The position numbers and the translations under genes are program-made. Of a stretch of 64,000 bases of DNA, positions 678 through 24,083 are shown one piece after another. Under the pieces are notes generated by a model, which was given only the letters and a program-made list of their open reading frames with translations, was not told where the DNA came from and made no database searches. The stretch covers positions 3,178,408 through 3,242,407 of the forward strand of contig CAJFCJ010000006.1 in the NCBI GenBank assembly GCA_904063045.1, read 5' to 3'. This stretch comes from Dimorphilus gyrociliatus (lineage: Eukaryota > Animalia > Annelida). Position 1 is the first letter of the stretch; the number at the start of each line of letters is the position of its first letter.

Positions 678-1169
678 CTTGCAGTATTAAACGATAAAGT
701 AAATCAATTGTTAACACGTATCGGGAGCCAAATTATCTATATCGTATTATTCGATTTCGATTTAGTAAGGGCCTAGACTTTAAGTATGTTCCAAAAATAA
801 GTAATTATTTATAAATTATTAATAGGCGTTTTTTATATCCATTAAACACTTAGAGAATTTTCTTTTATTATGTGATATACATGTGAAATTTTTTTTTTTT
901 GGTAGTACTAGAAATTTTACACTGAATTTTGAATAAAGATTGAGAAGCCTGAGAAAATAATATTCTCATTACATAAGATAAAATAAATGAGTACATTCTA
1001 TAGTTTGTTAAACAAAAAGGTTCTATATTTTCGATTTTATGTAATTGGTAGTGAATACGCTCTTTTAGATAGATTAGGCGTATCATAAGTAACATTCTTA
1101 GAAATTGAAGCCTCGTTTATCGATATAGCTATTATTTGAAACGATTAATTTGAAGACCACATGGGAATT

Positions 1170-1180
1170 TGCGCATGCGT
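1170..1180. promoter_or_regulatory. NRF1-like motif (TGCGCATGCGT) in the divergent TRMT112/PET117 promoter
   Basis: Near-perfect match to the NRF1 palindrome TGCGCATGCGCA, a GC-rich island in AT-rich DNA between two head-to-head housekeeping genes. Confidence 0.5.
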
Positions 1181-1606
1181 ACTAAAGAATTAGCAGAAAA
1201 CACCGCAAATTTTATCCCCCAAGCAGTGTCCAAAATTTTAGTTGTAGTTTATCTTTGAAAAAATCAAATTATTTTCATTTGCGGACAAGAGCCAATCTCA
1301 TTAGTCTAACTATTTCATAAAATTGGTTAAAGTATGATCTTAATTTTTACTCGATAAACTATTTACTTTCAATAACAAATTTTTGTTTTTCGTTATTTTT
1401 ATAAGAAAATTATTTTCTTTAGTGCAAATTTATATGCTTAAAGAAAAATAATCTATCCATCAAATCTCATTAGAAAGCGTGTTTGTTCTTGTTCAAATAT
1501 TGTAATTTACAAATGGGGAACAACTGCAACATTAACCTTTTTAACCTACAGACTGGTATTTGTATTTCGAGATCACGAACGTGACGTGTTTTTAATTGCT
1601 CAAAAG

Positions 1607-1908
1607 ATGAGTCTAGGATCGAAAGTAGCTTTGGCAGGATCAATCGTTTTCACAACAGGAATCATTACGTATGTCCATAATAAACAGAAGCAAGACATTG
1701 AGGTAATTGTTCTTAAATCTAGTATATTTTCGGATAAGATTGTTATAATCGACTTATTATCGTTCAGCGTCTACACGACGGAGTTATAAAAGATGCTGAA
1801 AGACAGGAGATGAGAAAAATAGCTAATCTAAAACACCTACAAGAACAAATTGATCTAACAAAAGCTTTAAAAGCTCAAAGAGATAAGGAGATGAAAACTG
1901 AGAGCTGA
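1607..1908 (+). CDS. PET117: Cytochrome c oxidase assembly factor PET117 (exons 1607-1702, 1768-1908)
   Basis: MSLGSKVALAGSIVFTTGIITYVHNKQKQDIE|RLHDGVIKDAERQEMRKIANLKHLQEQIDLTKALKAQRDKEMKTES*. The VH..Q..D..RLH.GV..D.ERQ pattern is characteristic of PET117; GT-AG phase-0 intron. Confidence 0.92.
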
Positions 1909-2793
1909 TATAATAAAACATTCAATAGAAAAGACTAAAATAACTTTTCTGCATATGTGCTTCTAAAATGAAATATATTATACCTGTCTGTTAAGTATTT
2001 TTTTGTAAATTAGTATACTTATGTAATTTTCACAGATATTTTTGAAATAAAGCTATAAAAATGATTAAATCCAATAATATTTTTTATAGGAACAGTAAAT
2101 ACATTTTCATAATGTTTATATGTTACCTGTACACAAATAAACATTGTTAAAAATTGTTTCAACTAACGACATTGTTAACCATAATAGAACTTAATAGAAT
2201 AATATCTTACTCCATCTATAGGATATTTTTTAAAGGATATATGGCCTCAAAGTTAAACGAAGCTCAAACTCAATCAGAAGTGACACTGAAGAATAGCATT
2301 TACTATACATCTTTTAAATGGATAAACTTATAATTAACACATTTATTGAATTCTTCGACTTTTATAAGGATTTCTACAGGATAGGAATATATAAGTGGCT
2401 GTTTGTTAATAGTGACTATGGATATATATTCTTCAAGAAGGAAATTCCGAATTAAATACTTTGTTTCGTCGTCAATTTAAGCTAGCCGTTTTAAAAAGAT
2501 ACCGAGGAGCTTTAAATGAAATGAAACCAATACTGAACACTTAAAAATTTAGTTAAAAACTTAACTAATTCTGACATTGGCGAACCTAAATTGAGTAGTG
2601 TGTTAGAAGTTTGCCAAATAAAAAAGAGTACACTCAATAAACAACGTTGAAGTTTTCTCCAACGATTCGAATTAAAGGACGAATTTGGCCTCTCATGGCA
2701 GTTCAGCTGCACAAAAAATGAAAAAAAACAAGGCCTGTTGAGTAGATGTAAAATTATAGGCCAACTGTGTTCTAAGCCCTGTCGACTAATTAG

Positions 2794-2820
2794 CCAATGA
2801 ACAGTTGTGTTGTATATAAA
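2794..2820 (+). promoter_or_regulatory. CCAAT box plus TATA box upstream of the TALE gene
   Basis: CCAAT at 2794-2798 and TATATAAA at 2813-2820, about 95 nt upstream of the ATG at 2914. Confidence 0.5.
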
Positions 2821-2913
2821 GCTACCAACCAGCAGCCTCGTATTATTATTCATGAACACCGAGGTACTGTGAGAAAGCACGTTTTAATTACATGACTCAT
2901 ACTTTTTTGTAAA

Positions 2914-5086
2914 ATGGAAGAAGAAAGTTCTGTTCATCCTCTTTCACCTGATATGCTACAAAGTTTTTCATGGAACAGTTCTTCAAGAATTTTTCAAAAC
3001 ATAGTTGACCAAGGTAGGGGAGATTTCACTTGCAAATAACTTTAGAAAAATAACATTTTTTTTTGCTCTGCTTTAAAGATAAAGTTCAGTTTTGGAATCC
3101 ACGGCCATATCTTTCGCCATCCGAATTAGGTAAAGTTCTAGAAATTTTATTTTAACCAATTAAATACAATGCTTAGCGTAAATTTTCTAGTATGCTATAA
3201 GTAGAATTCATTCCACTCTTTAAAGTAAAACTAAAGAACATCTTAGCACTCAATCTTTAATTGTTTTCAACTCATTTTTTAAAAGTACATACTTATTCTT
3301 TCGTTTTGTAAACATTGAGTGAATTCATAACAGAAAATGACAAATTGTGTTGGAGCCAACCCTTATCTGTGAGAAATTATCAAACTGCAGCCGAACCAGG
3401 TAAGCGAAAATAAATTTCATCAACAGAGATGTAAAACGCTTTTCGTTTGAAGCCTTTATATATTCAGATTCAATGACATGGAATCCTCCAGTAAGTGCTC
3501 CATCTGTGCCATGTAGAACTTTTCAAAATGGCTTCGAACAAGGTTGTTATTAAAATACTTTCTGTCATGTGCTTTGCAAGAAATATTATTTTATCTAATT
3601 AGCCTATCCCGTCTTGAATGAGTCCAGTCGTGTAATTATGGATCTTGATACGCAAAATTTTCTTACGCCCAGCAAGACACCCATAAAAAATGAACAGAAC
3701 GTTGTCTGCCTCGGTAAAATGTCCACAGGATCCAATAGCGAGTATCAGCCAAATCTTGTTGACACTCCTCCATCGTCACCAATAGAAATATTTCCTCCGG
3801 GCCCCAGCAAGGTAATTAAAAAGCTTAAAAAGCATGTAAATTTTTTTGTTAATTGTCTTTATTGTATTGAAATTATTAGGTGAAATATCTTCCAAATCCA
3901 CCTCCTGTAGCCACTGTATATCCAACTACAATCGATTTTCCATATGGAGAAAAATTCTATCAAATGTGTGATGTTCAGGAAGAACATAGCCGTATATTAA
4001 GAATGTTTGAAAAAGCAAAAGATAACTTACTTTTAGTTCAAAGTATAGAAGAATTAGCAGATAATTATCAAAAGAGTATCGAGATGATAGAGAGCAAACG
4101 ATACAACACGCTCATGTCGAACGTTTTGGAAGAGGAAATGAAATATTCAATAAATTTACATTTTAATAAACAAAGGTTTGAAGCTGCTCAAAAAGTTCGA
4201 GAAGATTTAGCTGGGTAAAATAAAATTTCTTTTTTAACGTTCTTTATTAAACAATCAGCAATATTATCAGTTTTGGAATTTATGAAGAAGTAAACGAAGA
4301 GGATGGCGATGCTTCCGCTGCAGCTAGGAGTCTTCTCGAATTGTCGAGATCAGCTCCGACAGACTTTCCAGACGATGACGACGAAACTCCTCAGAGGCGG
4401 CGACGGGGAAGTAGATATTTACAAAAAACAGCAGTTAAATTAATGGAGCGATGGTATGCCTCAAACAAAGTACATCCATATCCATCGGATGAAGAAATTG
4501 AACGTTTATCGGCTGAAGGTGGAATTACAAGAGCTCAGGTTAAGAAATGGATGGCCAATAAGAGAGTTAGAAATTGTAACACATTATCTTATAACGGTTC
4601 GCAACTAGTTAATTAATGATCATAAAAATAATCTTCAATTTGCATTAAATAGGTGCCATCCATCCGAGAAAATTAAAACGGATAAAGAGAGAGCAAGCTA
4701 AACTAGACGGAACTTACATTCCAAGTCCCCCAAAAAATTCATTACAACGAAAGTATTTACCGCCCTATGCAGTTTCTGTTTTGTCGGCATGGTTTGATAC
4801 GCATAGGGACAATCCTTATCCGACTGAGCCCGAAAAAAAGGATTTAGCAAAATTGGCAGGAATTTCTGTTTCTCAGGTCCGGCACTGGTTTACCAACAGG
4901 AGAAGGCGGCTTGTAGAATCCCCTATAAAAAAAAAAACATGTCCGAATATGCAATATATGAGTCCTGTAAGCAGTCAGAATAATTTGAATCAATATCCAA
5001 ATATTGGAGTGAGTGATAACCAGATGATTCTGGTGGTTGAGAAAGGAGAGGATGAAATGATGGTTGAAGGAGTTTGTAGCTCATGA
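2914..5086 (+). CDS. Spiralian-type TALE-class homeobox protein with two homeodomains (8 exons, about 531 aa)
   Basis: Exons 2914-3013, 3079-3129, 3334-3399, 3468-3542, 3603-3811, 3880-4214, 4271-4596 and 4653-5086 join in frame through GT-AG introns. HD1 (LMERWYASNKVHPYPS...QVKKWMANKRVR) and HD2 (LSAWFDTHRDNPYPT...QVRHWFTNRRRR) both carry the TALE PYP loop. Exon 6 encodes a helical domain upstream of HD1. Confidence 0.88.
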
Positions 5087-17503: not shown

Positions 17504-19864
17504 TTATGCTTGTATTTTGACATCAGCAATTCCAGTGACTCCGGTTAGTTGTGCAGAATGGAAGGATGCCAGTAATGATTTTACCCCGCTATGAACAGGC
17601 ACCATATTTACAGTTGTACTAACTCTTTCGTACGATTCAACATCTCTGCAAAATTGAGAATTTAATTTTAAAGTTTTATGATACTAAATGTTTTATAAAT
17701 ATAGGTTTTACCTGCAAGATATGATTTCTATTAGTCCTCCTGGTCCTTCTACTCTCCATTCGCATTGGGTCAAGGCTACCGGCAAAGTATTCTCTAGTTC
17801 TATTGATAGGTTGCATGGTACGCCTACTCTTACGAGTGGAGGTATTTTAATTGACAATTCAGGGCTCTTTAATCTTCCTCTTTGGACATGTGCATATTGT
17901 TGTCCAGTTTGTTGTACACTTGCTCTTACTGCAACGTCAAAACAAAGATGATCTGTCAGCGTATATATATAGTCTTCATATGTTAGATGTAAGGTAAGAG
18001 TTTCAGCTTTGATGGCTGGTAATTCTATGTCGTACACTCTCTGCTTATTTACCGCTTTCCTTATACCCGTATAGTAGACGCTAAGGACCGCGATTGTCAA
18101 GGTTACGTTCCTTACAGACCTACTACAATTTTGTACTGTAATGGTTACGTCGAACGGGGCTCCGGCAATAAGATCTTCTGGAACAGATGCTTCAATTTTT
18201 ACATCTTCTATTTCGTTAACACTCGACATATCCAATTGCGTGCGAGCGCAAGGCAAATTTGCAGATCGAACTGACGCTCTCTTCTCTTCGCTTCCTATAG
18301 AGAATTTATAGTTAGCACTGATATCCACTTGGAGAGGGAGAACATGTTTATGTGTCTTATCCAACACAGTTACTCCTTTAGGATTTCTCTGGCAAATTCC
18401 AATACTATTTGCTAGGGTGTCTTTTTCAACCCTTTTCATCCATCCTCCATCCTGTCTTCTTAACCAATGAACAACATCAGCATTAAGACTACCAAATGCG
18501 CAATCTGTTCCAAATGGGGCGTAAGCTAAACCTTTTTTTAGGGCACAAACTGATATAGGCCCAGCATATCCAGTGCTTATTGACATATGCCTGGGTAGAG
18601 GATCGACCATCTGCCATCCACCCATTCCTTTTGGTAAATCTCTTCTGGCAAAATAACACTCCAGCCAGACTCTATATGACCATATAAAGTCACTATCCAA
18701 ATTTGACATGGCAGAACCTTTCTCATCCCAATGAAAATCCAATGTTTTGTAGGAATCAAGATCATGAGCTACTGAGAATCCTGTTACTAATCTTGTAACA
18801 ATACCTAATGATTTGAATATAGAAGATAAAACGGCCGAAACTACAGAGCACTGGGCATAGCGAACTTTTTCTTCTTTCTCAAGCCATTTTTCCAGTATAG
18901 AAATGGTACTTAGCCATGCAGTTGGGGCTGTGCTTCCTTGGTATTTACCGTCGAATCTTGTTTCGACTACCCTTTCGCATATTAAAGGTGTTAAAGCTCT
19001 ACAGATGGCGATGACATCACCTCTTGAGTTGATGTCAACCGTTTCCAATAATTTTAGGGCCGAAGTGAGAACTGGAGTTTCATACTGAGAAAATTTCCAC
19101 GGTCTTATACCGGGTTGAAATTCACTTCCGGTTAGGATTCCACCAGTCTCTGAGAGAAGGTGCTCTTCCCTCTCCATTTCGTTATCCAAATATAAGCTAT
19201 CATACTGACAGAAGGGATTTCCTATGATAATTATATGAACTTTGTGCTTATAACTGTAAACAGACTTTAATTCTTCATTCAATCTTAGCGTGTCTATTTT
19301 TAGATTCCACGATCCTATTACACAATCAGGAGGGGAGTTTAATCGTAAATTGACGATATTTCCGTCCGTTGATAGGACATCAACACCCCATTTACACCGT
19401 CTCATTCCAAGATTAAAAGACATTGGTACAGACGTCCCTTTACTGTATCTAGGAGCATCTCCAATTTCGAGAACGACGGCTGCTTCATCTTCTTCGGTTA
19501 GGGGTCTATTAAATTCGACGCTAATATCGAATGATTGGCCTCTTCTAACAATAAGAGTTGCGGGATCCGAAGTACCATTTTCCCATTTAATTGCCCAAGT
19601 TAATTCGTAATTGTGTGTTTTATGATCAAGCGTGTTTTTGTGTACATTTAAGATGACGTCCTTTACCAGGACAGTTTCAGTTTCTATTCCTTCATAATTT
19701 GTATAATCGTTAACAGACCATCCTTTTGGTGGATCACAGCTTCTAACTGCTGTTAGTCGTCCAGTTGCCAGAGGAGGACAACTGCTCTCTGTCTCCGAGA
19801 CCTTACCATCTGGGGATGTTGATCCAGTCATCACCTTATTAAATTTATAGACTTTTTGAATCAT
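17504..19864 (-). CDS. Transglutaminase-fold protein, predicted catalytically impaired (exons 19864/19831-17712 and 17645-17504)
   Basis: TGase N-domain (LIVRRGQSF, SPPDCVIGSW), core (GNPFCQYDSLYL, RPWKFSQY, RYAQCSVV, FSVAHD, WSYRVW, GGWQMVDP) and two C-terminal beta-barrels; the second exon completes the barrel and ends KIQA*. Confidence 0.9.
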
Positions 19865-20206
19865 TTAACTATTATTCTAACAAATTATTGCAGTTTATCA
19901 CTTGCAATTGCAGTATTAATATTTAAAGAAACCATTGGTTTGATTTGATAGATGAAATTGTTAAACTTACTTACCAAAAAAATCAAAAGTTAAAGTTAAT
20001 TGAAGTTTAACGTGTCGTTAGGTTGATAAGACACTTTTTGGTTGTCAGGCAATAACGCTTTAACCGCTGAGGAATCGATTAATAGTATTTGAGCGCGAAG
20101 GTTAAAGCGTGAAAGGCTATCAATTTTTTTATTATTACGACCACGTGATCAATATATTAACCATTCGATATTAAGCATGTTTTAGCGGGTAATTGACTTT
20201 TTGGTA

Positions 20207-20219
20207 AGCGCCATCTGTA
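20207..20219. promoter_or_regulatory. CTCF-like motif AGCGCCATCTGTA
   Basis: Matches the CTCF core (reverse complement TACAGATGGCGCT); lies between the divergent TGase-like and IQCM-like genes. Confidence 0.45.
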
Positions 20220-20966
20220 TTTTAAATGACAGCTGGAAAACAGGATGTCAGTAAGTTTGCAAATATTGGAAAACGGCTAACGTCATATTTGCACTGGAAA
20301 AAAACAAAACAAATTAAAATATAGCGACTGCAAAAAAAGTTAAGATTAATCGAAATATAATTATTAATTATATAATCCCAGAAAATCTTTAATAATACGG
20401 ATATTTAATTAATCGATATTTAATTGTAGCCTTTAAACTATTTACACGGCGACGTGAGGAAAAAATCTTTGACAAACTATTTTAGTCTTTTTGTTTCTTT
20501 TCTAGAATAGCTTGGCAATATGCATTTTATTTTTAGATAATACCTATTGGCTAATTCATTTGCCTAATTAGCATATATGAATACAAATTTGAAGATTTTA
20601 TCAGGATTTCTAAAGAAAAACAGTTAGCAAAAGAAACAAAAAATAGGTAGTTTCTTTTTTGAGCTATTTAGTAAAAGAGAAAAGGAATTATGAAATGTTT
20701 GCACGAACGTGACAAACATTTATTGAAGCGGTAATTTTAATTTATTGACGATAATCAGTCACGCCGGGGTAAACGGTGTGAAACGAACTTTTCATACTAG
20801 TTTTAATTGAATTTTCTTGTCTGTATCACTCTGATTGTCGGAAGAGGACAGTCAAAACAAACACACTGAAAGGGAGAATAAATCTTAGTGAAGATAACTC
20901 ATCGGATCCATCTAAAGATATATAAATAGAGTTGTTTGTATGTTTTTGTTTACTGCTTAAGTAGGG

Positions 20967-22751
20967 ATGTATCAGAATATGAATTGGAAGAAATCCGGAT
21001 TTCTTCCATACTCTCTTAAAGCAAGACAATTAGAATTTACTGATCCAGGATTTGATAGATATTCTTGGTCTGCTGAGGTTCGATTAAAGGAGGAACGACT
21101 TGCTAACGAAAGATTTAGTTTGGAAGCCAGGAAGACGAAAAGGCAAATGAGGTCTAAGCCTTGGTCAGCCGATAAGAGTAAGGCTGAAGAAAGACAGAAA
21201 GTCGGTAGGGAGATAAAACATGTGACTAAATTCAGAAGATGGCTCGAAGAAGAGAGAAAAGCTGCTAAGCAACACCAAATGAACAATGAAGCCAGGAATA
21301 GAGAAAAGATAAGAGAGGAAAGAAAATCAGCGACAGTTTTAGCCAAGGAGAGAGAAAAGGAGAGAGAATTGGAGAAGATAAAAATGAGTAAGGAAATAGA
21401 AGCTTCAATGAAAATAAATAGTATTGTTAAAGGTTTTATTGTAAGAACTAGATTAATGAAAATTCGATTCAGAATTCACAAATCGCATGGAGACTGGAAG
21501 AATTTTATAAATGAATATAAAGGGATTCTGCAAAGAGTACAGAAAAGATATGGTAAACAAAAAATATCAACTCCTTTTAACACAAAAGATATCGTCAGAT
21601 TCATGTCAAGAAAGGAAAAGTATGATAAAACATTTTACAATATGGCGGTCGGTGACAAACTAGCTAAACATAATTTAATGAAGTTTTTTAGGGAGAATAG
21701 TTCTACCTTAACGGAAAGACAAGTAAATATTGCTTTTAGATCTCTATTTCAGAAATGTCAATCTAAAGCAGATATTTTCCTTGTATCCGATTTTTCGCCC
21801 ACCCTCTCGGATACAAGCTTCCGTACAATGCAGACGTTTTTAAAAGAGTTTGTCAGATGTTTGCATATATCAACAGAAAATGTTAGAATAGGATTTAGTC
21901 CTTTTAATACAGATGTTTTTGAAGGGTTTGATATTGATCAATATGGAATTTTATCGGATATTCTTAAGGGTTTAGACTTTGTTAAATACTCTAAAAACAC
22001 TATAACTTTTGAATCGGCTTTTAAGAAAGCTAAAGAAGGACTTCAAAAAAGTAGACGATCAGCTCCAAAGATAATGATAATAATCACTGATTTTTCCGAA
22101 GGAGGCCTCACAATAGACAAACAATCTCTAAAGAAAGACGAAATAAAGATAATTGGTGTTAATGTTGGCGACAGAACAGATGAATCATCCTCTACCTTGC
22201 TCGGGAAAAGTTCAACTTTTCAGTTGAATTCAATTCTAATTTTGGAGAGAATTCGTTTCAAAATGTATAGAAAATTAAAAATAAAGAATTGTCAATATTG
22301 CAACTTTCGAATACCCGAAGATTTCTTAATCGATATGAACAGACCGTTGCACAAGCATGAAATTTTTGAATTAGCTTGGACTCTTTACCCTCCAAGCGGA
22401 GCTGATATTTCAAAAGAGGAACAAATTCAATGGATAGAGAACGGTGGTATTCCAAATTTATATCCAAAGTTGAAATTGCTAAATGAAAAAGTTAAAATCG
22501 AAGAAGGAAAGGAAGAGAAAAGTCTTTGTTGGCAAATTCATTCTAAACTCGATATGAATTTCGATTCGAAGAAGAAAGCCCTTAAAAGTTCGAGTTCAGC
22601 ATCTTGGGAAGATCTAGAAGGAATGGCCGAAGATTATCTTAAGAAGAATAAAAAGCACCAGGTAAAAGAAAAGCTCAAAATAGAACTTGAAGAGAAGAAG
22701 AAAGAAAGGAATAGAAAACCTTTCAATCACCAACAATCACAAGAATCTTGA
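20967..22751 (+). CDS. Intronless coiled-coil + IQ + IQCM-like protein with an internal VWA domain (594 aa)
   Basis: Single 1785-nt ORF. IQ-like INSIVKGFIVRTRL; VWA ADIFLVSDFSPT...VRIGF...PKIMIIITD...IKIIGVNVG; flanking segments (FINEYKGILQRVQKRYG, RKEKYDKTF, ELAWTLYPPSGA) resemble IQCM as I recall it. Confidence 0.8.
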   Translation: MYQNMNWKKSGFLPYSLKARQLEFTDPGFDRYSWSAEVRLKEERLANERFSLEARKTKRQMRSKPWSADKSKAEERQKVGREIKHVTKFRRWLEEERKAAKQHQMNNEARNREKIREERKSATVLAKEREKERELEKIKMSKEIEASMKINSIVKGFIVRTRLMKIRFRIHKSHGDWKNFINEYKGILQRVQKRYGKQKISTPFNTKDIVRFMSRKEKYDKTFYNMAVGDKLAKHNLMKFFRENSSTLTERQVNIAFRSLFQKCQSKADIFLVSDFSPTLSDTSFRTMQTFLKEFVRCLHISTENVRIGFSPFNTDVFEGFDIDQYGILSDILKGLDFVKYSKNTITFESAFKKAKEGLQKSRRSAPKIMIIITDFSEGGLTIDKQSLKKDEIKIIGVNVGDRTDESSSTLLGKSSTFQLNSILILERIRFKMYRKLKIKNCQYCNFRIPEDFLIDMNRPLHKHEIFELAWTLYPPSGADISKEEQIQWIENGGIPNLYPKLKLLNEKVKIEEGKEEKSLCWQIHSKLDMNFDSKKKALKSSSSASWEDLEGMAEDYLKKNKKHQVKEKLKIELEEKKKERNRKPFNHQQSQES

Positions 22752-22817
22752 AGAAAATATATTATTATTAAAGCTGACACCTAATCATATTTTCCACGCA
22801 CGATATCAATGTGAAGA

Positions 22818-22830
22818 AGCGCCCTCTACA
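22818..22830. promoter_or_regulatory. CTCF-like motif AGCGCCCTCTACA
   Basis: CTCF core GCGCCCTCTA, 67 nt after the IQCM-like stop codon. Confidence 0.4.
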
Positions 22831-24083
22831 AAAAAAAAATTAAACTAAATGAATAAATATAATAGTCTATTCAATGTTGTCTATTCCCTTCTTATTAAAA
22901 GTATATAAAGAAATATATAATGAATAGTTGAATTTTTCTTCTGTTTTATGTAAAAAAAGACAAAAAAAAACAATAGATGGCATACATATGCATATATATA
23001 TATATATATTGTTATGTTGGAATACTTCACACAGAGAAGCTATACAGAAAAATATCAGAAGGTACACTTTCTTATGCTTTTGTATAAAAGTGAAGCACAT
23101 AGAGACTACTCAAACTAATATCCGTAGCAAAAAAAAGACACATTTCTGTTGTTGTTATTATCGTTATTCGGGCAAGTAGGAGTAAGATTTTTCTCCTCAT
23201 CCCTTTTTGTAGATAATTCTTTTTCTTTTTTTTTTAAAAAAAAAAGGCATCTATAAGCAAACAGAAGCAAAAAGAAAAAAAAACAAATAAACAGGAGAAA
23301 AAAAAGAGGAGAGAAAGGAACGAAACTAGCATCTTTTTTTATATGTAATATATATTGTATACTTACATACATACATACATATATATATATATAATAAAAC
23401 AAAAGAATGAAGGTCATTTTTTTGTTTTCAAATAGACAAAAAAAGTTTTTGCCTTCTTTACAAGATTTGTATGATTATAAAGAGAGAACAGGCTAATGCA
23501 TATTTTTTTCTCCGTCAATAAATGGAAAAAAGAAATAACGCAAAATGTAAACAAACAAACAAAAAAAACATACATTAAAGTAAACAATTTTTATAAGCAC
23601 CAATATGCAAAAATAAGAACATTTTGTTTTTTTAAAAAAAAATGAGATTAAAAACAGTTATTACAATATAATTATGTCAAGCACTTTGTTCATTTTTCTT
23701 CTACTGCAAAATGAGAAGAAGAAGATGATGAAGAAGAAGAATAAGAATAAGAAGTATTAATAGTAATAGAAGCAAACTTGTTCGTGCTATTTTTTGTCTG
23801 TTTTCTTTTAAACGTATACATAAAATGAAAATAAAGAACTAATAGTCATTTTTTTAAAAAGAAAAAACTAAAAAACAAATGAAAGTAAGAGAGAAGATGT
23901 TTCTTTTTTACTATGGATAGATAGGCCGACGTTTCTAATGTTGACTAGAGTCGGTTGACATTTCCGAAAAAAGAAAATAAAAATGGATGTTGTATAAAGA
24001 TAGAAGGTTTCTTTCTTTTTGTTCTTGTCCTATGCTTTTTTTTTTTTTTACATTTTCTTATTTCGCTATAAAATTGAATAGCA

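Follow-up and report, generated by a model that had tools for sequence, protein, structure and literature searches.

A lophotrochozoan variant of the IQCM family with a nested von Willebrand factor A domain, encoded by an intronless gene in Dimorphilus gyrociliatus

How does a von Willebrand factor A (VWA) domain of the extracellular-matrix type come to lie inside a protein that resembles IQCM? The question is raised by an open reading frame (ORF) in a stretch of 64,000 nucleotides from the annelid Dimorphilus gyrociliatus (NCBI GenBank assembly GCA_904063045.1, contig CAJFCJ010000006.1, positions 3,178,408 to 3,242,407 of the forward strand), which as a whole we call the window. Positions 20967..22751 on the plus strand, the strand of every feature of this gene given below, form a single unbroken, intronless ORF of 594 amino acids plus stop in the ORF list of the window. 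It is a complete IQCM-like ORF with a nested VWA domain, collinear with that of a relative whose protein is 82% identical (contig L001). Its product belongs to a conserved lophotrochozoan family, present in the databases but undescribed, that is a variant of the IQCM family with nested VWA domains. A preliminary description, made from the letters of the DNA alone, had proposed an in-frame VWA module within an IQCM-like protein and had placed the features of the ORF to within a few residues of the positions reported here.

Our analysis of the two flanks of the VWA domain locates it within its host. The N-terminal flank, taken alone as aa 140-262 (window 21384-21752), was compared with 1.84 billion representative proteins in a full HMMER search; a language-model look-up of the same residues led to IQCM clusters (score 0.91) and was taken as a lead only. 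The search gave 39 matches at E <=1e-3, among them proteins named IQCM from Caretta, Pelodiscus, Latimeria and Centrocercus (E 3.7e-6 to 6.5e-4, library-wide) and a hemichordate relative from Glandiceps. In these named IQCM and Glandiceps proteins, the segment equivalent to the C-terminal flank comes within ~15-20 residues of the N-flank match, and a multiple alignment places it directly after the N-terminal part in VWA-less IQCM proteins, the two being contiguous save for a linker of 8-10 residues. Profiles of 16 VWA-bearing and 19 VWA-less natural full-length sequences, compared with hhalign, aligned with a probability of 100% and E 1e-47, the VWA being skipped as one gap. Since both flanks are homologous to IQCM and are contiguous there, the alignments indicate that the VWA domain is a true nested insertion in an IQCM-type core. 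The preliminary description had held that the two flanks correspond to one contiguous region of IQCM and had proposed looking for IQCM similarity across the join; the HMMER matches of the N-flank, together with an hhalign alignment that passes through both flanks, bear this out. What the window protein lacks is the contiguous core of IQCM itself, broken here by the ~180 residues of the VWA.

The insert resembles matrix-type VWA modules in both sequence and fold, as had been suspected. It covers aa 264-443 (21756..22295), starting at Cys264 and ending just past Cys442, and is supported by Pfam and by its fold; its limits agree with the pair of phase-1 introns that brackets the VWA in the orthologs of Owenia, Lingula and Mytilus. 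Pfam PF00092 (VWA) matches aa 269-411 with E 4.4e-15 and 56.8 bits against a cut-off of 23.8, and a PDB sequence search with the window protein yielded VWA matches only, the best being collagen VI alpha3 and the I domains of integrins alpha1 and alpha2. In an AlphaFold2 (AF2) model built on 25 family sequences, with a mean predicted local distance difference test score (pLDDT) of 73.7, aa 268-436 form an alpha/beta domain. Foldseek matched this domain to collagen VI N2 (E 3e-10, template-modelling score [TM] 0.75), to vWF A1, A2 and A3 and to integrin I domains, with E ~1e-9 to 1e-10 and TM by target of 0.70-0.81.

The metal ion-dependent adhesion site (MIDAS) of the module appears nearly intact. 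In the ortholog alignment its first loop is D275-F-S-P-T279 (21789..21803), with S277 at the second position; its Thr would be T345 or T347, within a candidate region at aa 344-348 (N-T-I-T-F, 21996..22010) that corresponds to T-R-T-D of the orthologs with a register of +/-1 residue; and its Asp is D375, in I-T-D373-375 (22083..22091) on strand beta4, aligned with the conserved TDG motif of the orthologs. The third position of the first loop is Thr instead of Ser: DxSxS is kept in 20 of the 25 family members, and the window protein and its relative have DxSxT. Cys264 stands just ahead of the VWA and Cys442 and Cys445 just behind it, the last in a post-VWA linker defined by alignment (aa 444-457, 22296..22337) where pLDDT is low, the model being disordered over aa 440-456 (pLDDT <50). 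These residues agree with what had first been noticed, a complete VWA domain with cysteines at its ends and a near-intact MIDAS. Elsewhere in the family, Lingula, Lineus, Tubulanus, a Logan sequence, Lottia and Patella have a larger Cys cluster, C-x3-C-x2-C-(H), directly behind the VWA; in the window protein only C-x2-C (aa 442-445) is left of it, and bivalves have lost it. In the alignment, the members with this cluster, except the two limpets, also retain a Cys at the N edge of the VWA. The cluster may be a metal site or a relic of the matrix-type disulfide.

The preliminary description had implied a one-off. This did not hold, as the same architecture is found at the same site in four phyla. 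Pfam VWA is carried by 17 of 40 family sequences, a by-parts phmmer analysis gave the order N-flank, VWA, C-flank in all complete VWA-bearing members, and in the alignment the domain occupies an identical site in 17 of 17 VWA-bearing proteins. These members come from annelids (Owenia, Lamellibrachia, the window protein and its relative), molluscs (Sinanodonta, Gigantopelta, Saccostrea, Solemya, Mytilus, Pinctada, Argopecten, Lottia and Patella), a brachiopod (Lingula) and nemerteans (Lineus and Tubulanus). A profile word search adds further molluscs (Haliotis, Mizuhopecten, Potamilus, Mytilus edulis, Mercenaria, Tegillarca and Ruditapes), for a total of at least 24 proteins with the nested architecture across Mollusca, Annelida, Brachiopoda and Nemertea. 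Its matches outside the family share the VWA only, and comprise collagens VI and XXVIII, integrin alpha11 and a multi-domain protein of Lottia named "chitinase" in UniRef. Neither the full HMMER search nor the profile word search found a VWA-bearing member outside Lophotrochozoa.

Members of the family are listed in databases as unnamed, as "VWFA domain-containing" or, mistakenly, as collagen-like; the automatic names "collagen alpha-1(XIV) chain-like" or "Collagen alpha..." given to the Ruditapes and Mizuhopecten proteins (P0074 and P0066) evidently stem from the VWA alone. The literature searched contained no paper linking IQCM and VWA in one protein, the two terms co-occurring only in an unrelated peptidome study, and mentions of IQCM itself were confined to gene lists, where it figures as a human gene that is testis-specific and of unknown function (PMC7436996). 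Some members vary the common plan. In the limpets Lottia (P0023) and Patella (P0024), a tandem second copy of the C-flank motif, consisting of the exiting helix with a T-x-Y/S-P-P segment, stands between the VWA and the regular C-flank, and in a protein of 278 aa (P0028) the stretch of the N-flank query that forms EF-hand-like motif 1 (query aa 74-113) is matched five times in tandem.

A second IQCM-type protein without VWA, mostly long (1400-1770 aa), is present in Lingula, Tubulanus, Haliotis, Ylistrum, Ruditapes, Physella and Pinctada, and such a VWA-less paralog is also found in the D. gyrociliatus genome. It lies on contig C13 (locus L004, G000:C13:515767-519009) on the minus strand at ~854-3063, where at least four exons, encoding two IQ motifs, are separated by introns of ~55-80 nt; the two introns in the core are of phase 1. 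Its exons (1525-1770, 1322-1461 and 1100-1249, minus), compared one by one and not as a joined gene model, each have their best match in the VWA-less lophotrochozoan group. The preliminary description had considered that spiralian IQCM relatives might routinely carry the VWA; this is half true, as there is a paralog family with the domain, beside which the VWA-less gene persists. In a tree made with the VWA columns removed and two truncated sequences (rows P0009 and P0015) left out, two clades emerge, one of deuterostome IQCM (99/96) and one of the whole set of lophotrochozoan sequences, VWA-bearing and VWA-less alike (99/96). The window protein is not a one-to-one ortholog of vertebrate IQCM, since the tree puts it in this lophotrochozoan clade of two paralog groups; the C13 gene is the closer counterpart. 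A single origin of the VWA-bearing group is not rejected (approximately unbiased test, p 0.49; log-likelihood difference 0.2).

The position and phase of introns bear directly on how the domain was acquired. Ortholog exons were mapped onto their own genomic loci. In the VWA-less genes examined, a single phase-1 intron falls exactly at the insertion site, after K461 in Glandiceps and after H275 in Pinctada, and in the C13 gene of D. gyrociliatus a phase-1 intron at the site falls within the Gly codon after Y-R of exon C; the contig of the VWA-less Lingula gene ends before the insertion site, which places it outside this comparison. In VWA-bearing genes, a phase-1 intron marks the N edge of the VWA in Owenia (after K424), Lingula (after R365), Tubulanus (after R439) and Mytilus (after R236), and another marks its far edge in Owenia (after S607), Lingula (after L547) and Mytilus (after P418). 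For Tubulanus only the N edge was mapped, the C-edge intron being left unresolved by the mapper. Three introns within the VWA, of phases 1, 0 and 1, are common to Owenia, Lingula and Mytilus, and the first two of these occur in Tubulanus also. The module defined by these exons starts with a Cys in Lingula and Tubulanus and has a Cys beside its end in Lingula; Owenia has the end Cys only.

A symmetric 1-1 block within a phase-1 intron is the classic exon-shuffling signature of matrix modules (Patthy's 1-1 rule). We propose that an IQCM gene was duplicated in the lophotrochozoan stem, and that a matrix-type VWA module, bracketed by Cys residues and by boundary introns of phase 1-1, was then inserted into a pre-existing phase-1 intron of one copy. 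This host intron would split the loop of the second of two EF-hand-like motifs. With the N and C termini of the VWA side by side, the host domain could still close around the insert, as it does around the integrin alpha I domain. In the lineage of D. gyrociliatus, all introns of the gene would later have been lost, with fast sequence change under strong purifying selection. Duplication in the lophotrochozoan stem with one gain of the VWA is the simplest reading. It is also conceivable that the ancestral IQCM gene already had the VWA, and that exact exon deletion removed it on two occasions, in deuterostomes and in the VWA-less paralog of lophotrochozoans. A 1-1 block that was cut out cleanly would likewise leave the single phase-1 intron that is seen, and the tree gives no firm branching order for the two lophotrochozoan groups. 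However, such a history needs two losses on the tree as against one gain, and the confinement of VWA-bearing members to Lophotrochozoa in both searches argues against it. We consider it unlikely.

The nature of the host core was approached through a turtle IQCM, whose AF2 model has a confident core at aa 167-312 consisting of a long IQ helix followed by a helix, a short strand, two helices, a short strand and a helix. Compared with 48,161 chains by VIA-align, this core gave Z of 7-8.5, a range that is "middling" by the tool's scale, with a root-mean-square deviation of 2.2-3.0 over 73-86 residues. Nearly all of the top 50 matches were EF-hand proteins, and the matches included an axonemal doublet-microtubule chain, troponin C, centrin, calmodulin and myosin light chains. 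Foldseek paired the core with EF-hand pairs at a probability of >=0.9, but with weak E of 0.08-0.5, and an Atlas structure search agreed weakly with an EF-hand pair. By eye, the canonical 12-residue calcium loop (DxDxDG...E) is present in neither loop of the alignment. On these structural comparisons, the host core is probably EF-hand-pair-like.

In the window protein, the N-terminal part of this core (aa 177-263, 21495..21755), supported by its IQCM matches and pLDDT, contains the helices of EF-hand-like motif 1 and the entering helix of motif 2. The C-terminal part (aa 458-491, 22338..22439), recognized by alignment and in the model, contains a short strand and the exiting helix of motif 2, with a TLYPP motif at aa 472-476 in the C-flank. 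The model is helical over aa 177-261 at pLDDT ~90, and the helices of aa 463-491 again reach ~90. Its elements run aa 206-226, 228-232, 234-244 and 250-261, then the VWA, then aa 461-462 and 463-473, with a beta bridge assigned by DSSP at aa 461-462. In the alignment with VWA-less proteins, the VWA lies in the loop of the second EF-hand-like motif, between the entering helix and the short strand.

Ahead of the core, DSSP of the AF2 model gives long charged helices at aa 34-60 and 86-173 (21066..21485), the second of which continues into the IQ-like motif; pLDDT is 74-92 across aa 90-173. The IQ-like motif reported earlier is present at aa 150-160 (I-N-x3-K-G-x3-R, 21414..21446), where it aligns with IQxxxRGxxxR of the orthologs, with the caveat that it is degenerate: Pfam IQ has no match in the window protein even at E 1, and matches 24 of the 40 family members. 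Following the core is a divergent charged C-terminal tail (aa 492-594, 22440..22748; alignment), which has not retained the S-T-W-x-N-P-I-x-D-G motif that other members conserve.

We infer that the product is a scaffold in the cytoplasm. Its long charged helix, with a weakened IQ site, would bind calmodulin or a light chain, and the nested VWA would add a MIDAS-type (DxSxT) protein-binding face to the IQ and pseudo-EF-hand pair module. The analysis demonstrates the architecture, homology, distribution, intron pattern and selection; the place of the protein in the cytoplasm and its partners are predictions, and a role in cilia or sperm would be a guess. A secreted or matrix protein, like most proteins with PF00092-type VWA, might be expected from a domain nearest to collagen VI, vWF-A and integrin I, whose terminal Cys pair is typical of disulfide-closed matrix VWA modules. 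In a crude Kyte-Doolittle scan (not SignalP), however, the window protein has no signal-peptide-like or transmembrane-like hydrophobic stretch, in agreement with the preliminary description, none of 25 members has an N-terminal hydrophobic leader, and the sole membrane-like peak among them is in the long Lottia model (Kyte-Doolittle value 2.2 at residue 295). The host family, moreover, has IQ and EF-hand-like parts that are typical of cytoplasmic proteins. Taken with the absent leader, these parts lead us to reject secretion, which we regard as very improbable.

Several lines of evidence concern the state of the gene itself. Logan contig L001 (run SRR23372216; also L002), from a related species, encodes a protein of 564 aa that is collinear with the window ORF up to its own stop, 30 codons earlier, with one in-frame indel only. 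Because L001 has the same uninterrupted ORF, the intronless state must be shared and old, and the absence of introns noticed at the outset is borne out by this collinear contig as well as by the single open ORF. Between the window gene and L001, dN is ~0.1 and dS is saturated; dN/dS is 0.04-0.06 in each segment where dS can be estimated, and in the VWA segment dS is too saturated to compute. These values argue that the gene is functional and under strong purifying selection, and is not a pseudogene.

The same relative helps to dispose of the idea that the insertion is recent and private to the D. gyrociliatus genome, or that assembly or gene modelling has joined an IQ gene to a VWA gene. Word searches with the whole protein or with its C-flank (aa 443-540), which gave only the window protein itself and one close relative, would fit such an origin, but the blanks are explained by fast divergence and low-complexity words, not by an absence of relatives: the long stem branch that carries the window protein and its relative measures 1.39 changes per column. 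The same domain order is seen in independently assembled genomes of four phyla, and an independent contig of a related species has the same ORF; the orthologs rule out a chimera or one-off, to which we give hardly any credence. A dead processed pseudogene, an intronless retrocopy whose frame is open by chance, would match a gene with no intron whose orthologs in Owenia, Lingula, Tubulanus and Mytilus each contain nine or more mapped introns, but it is excluded by the dN/dS values, is contradicted also by a dN of 0.106 in the VWA segment, by the strongly conserved noncoding block upstream and by the lack of any second VWA-bearing copy that might be its parent in the D. gyrociliatus genome (77,897,245 bases in 349 contigs searched), and is barely tenable.

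The window gene is nonetheless an intronless copy of an intron-bearing gene, as a retrogene is, and does not have the exon-intron structure shared by the VWA paralog group. Its intronless state is a derived loss and no argument against family membership; the introns may have gone by retrocopy or by loss in place. An A10 run lies ~100 nt past the stop, where the DNA is AT-rich. TGF-beta and OATP genes neighbour the Owenia gene, and DnaJ/DJC28, Mago-bind and GCN5L1 genes the Lingula gene; the two sets have no member in common and also differ from the neighbours in the window, and a search of the D. gyrociliatus genome for the OATP and DJC28_CD families found no copy near the window locus. In the published D. 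gyrociliatus assembly of ~78 Mb in ~350 scaffolds, introns have a median length of 66 bp and their density is reduced (PMC7854359).

We put the probability of the whole explanation, an IQCM paralog family, insertion of a VWA into a phase-1 intron, later intron loss and a scaffold product, at roughly 0.8. A number of points weigh against it. The VWA-bearing group is monophyletic in only 43% of bootstrap trees. No poly-A remnant, parent copy or informative synteny was found that would mark the route of intron loss, and a single continuous transcript is suggested by the open frame and its conservation alone. The packing of the two halves of the host domain against each other is likewise predicted from the DSSP beta bridge and from homology. 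As for activity, judged from the residues themselves, the Thr at the third MIDAS position may weaken metal binding and the degenerate IQ motif may weaken that of calmodulin.

The DNA upstream of the gene contains a strongly conserved noncoding block at window 20690-20860, which ends 100 nt and begins 280 nt ahead of the start codon. Against the relative's contig this block shows 91% identity without gaps, with 98% identity in its core (20701-20750); for comparison, identity is 56% at codon third positions and 35-50% in other flanking DNA. A shorter conserved patch lies at ~20381-20445. The block is single copy, with three short palindromes and a fold z-score of -1.9; it has no Rfam match and no ORF of note, and an Rfam scan of 20000-23500 found nothing credible. 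It lies in a 1.1-kb head-to-head intergenic region shared with a divergently oriented, intronless transglutaminase-like gene of 718 aa at 17708-19864 on the minus strand, in which Pfam Transglut_N and Transglut_C are clear and the catalytic core is weak (E 3.2e-5, 24.6 bits).

Comparison with known systems clarifies what is familiar in this protein and what is not. With vertebrate IQCM it shares homology over the whole core, including the IQ helix, EF-hand-like motifs 1 and 2 and the T-x-Y-P-P segment, and the VWA family shares core intron positions and phases with the hemichordate relative of IQCM. In contrast to vertebrate IQCM, it has a module of ~180 residues where IQCM has a linker of ~8-10, and its IQ motif has degenerated. 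The closest parallel for the nesting is the integrin alpha I domain, also a VWA fold in a loop of a host domain (fold match TM ~0.7-0.76), whose nesting works through the adjacent termini of the VWA fold. The integrin host is an extracellular beta-propeller, whereas in the window protein, which has no signal peptide, an EF-hand-like pair is the host. As observed with the A-domains of collagen VI, collagen XXVIII, matrilin and vWF, which are the best sequence and structure matches to the insert, the module starts and ends with Cys and has phase-1 boundary introns; it differs from them in being a single VWA, in having a non-secreted host and, in the intron-bearing orthologs, in its three internal introns.

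Copines, Rpn10, Ku, Sec23/24 and TFIIH p44 use cytoplasmic or nuclear VWA domains as protein-binding modules. Theirs belong to VWA subfamilies of their own and occupy terminal rather than nested positions, and none of these proteins is among the Pfam, PDB-sequence or Foldseek matches of the window VWA. The C-terminal domain of voltage-gated sodium channels likewise has an IQ helix and a non-canonical EF-hand-like pair on a single chain; the fold matches of the turtle IQCM include the NaV1.5 EF-hand domain, and one family member has a Pfam IQ_SCN5A_C match. The domain order is reversed in the channels, however, and there is no sequence homology, so that the likeness is one of resemblance only.

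It is tempting to speculate that the nested VWA makes the protein an intracellular switch of the integrin type, with the Cys cluster as a zinc clasp, although we think this doubtful. Binding of a ligand or metal at the MIDAS face would shift the C-terminal helix of the VWA and, through it, the second EF-hand-like motif. Since this helix runs straight into that motif, its movement would alter the hold of the EF-hand pair and the IQ helix on calmodulin or a light chain; the setting might be cilia or sperm. The C-x3-C-x2-C-H cluster of several orthologs could be a zinc clasp, taking the place of the matrix-type disulfide under the reducing conditions of the cytoplasm.

The family described here is no new kind of system. 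It provides an unusually clean instance of exon shuffling into a cytoplasmic host, in which the intron, its phase, the 1-1 module and both paralogs are all visible across several phyla, three of them with both module edges mapped and a fourth with the N edge. A family assignment is gained for proteins of molluscs, annelids, a brachiopod and nemerteans that were "uncharacterized" or wrongly "collagen-like", and IQCM itself gains a fold assignment, that of an IQ helix with an EF-hand-like pair. Besides the integrins, this is a second natural case of a VWA domain nested in a host domain, and it is one that could be used for testing whether nesting brings allosteric coupling.

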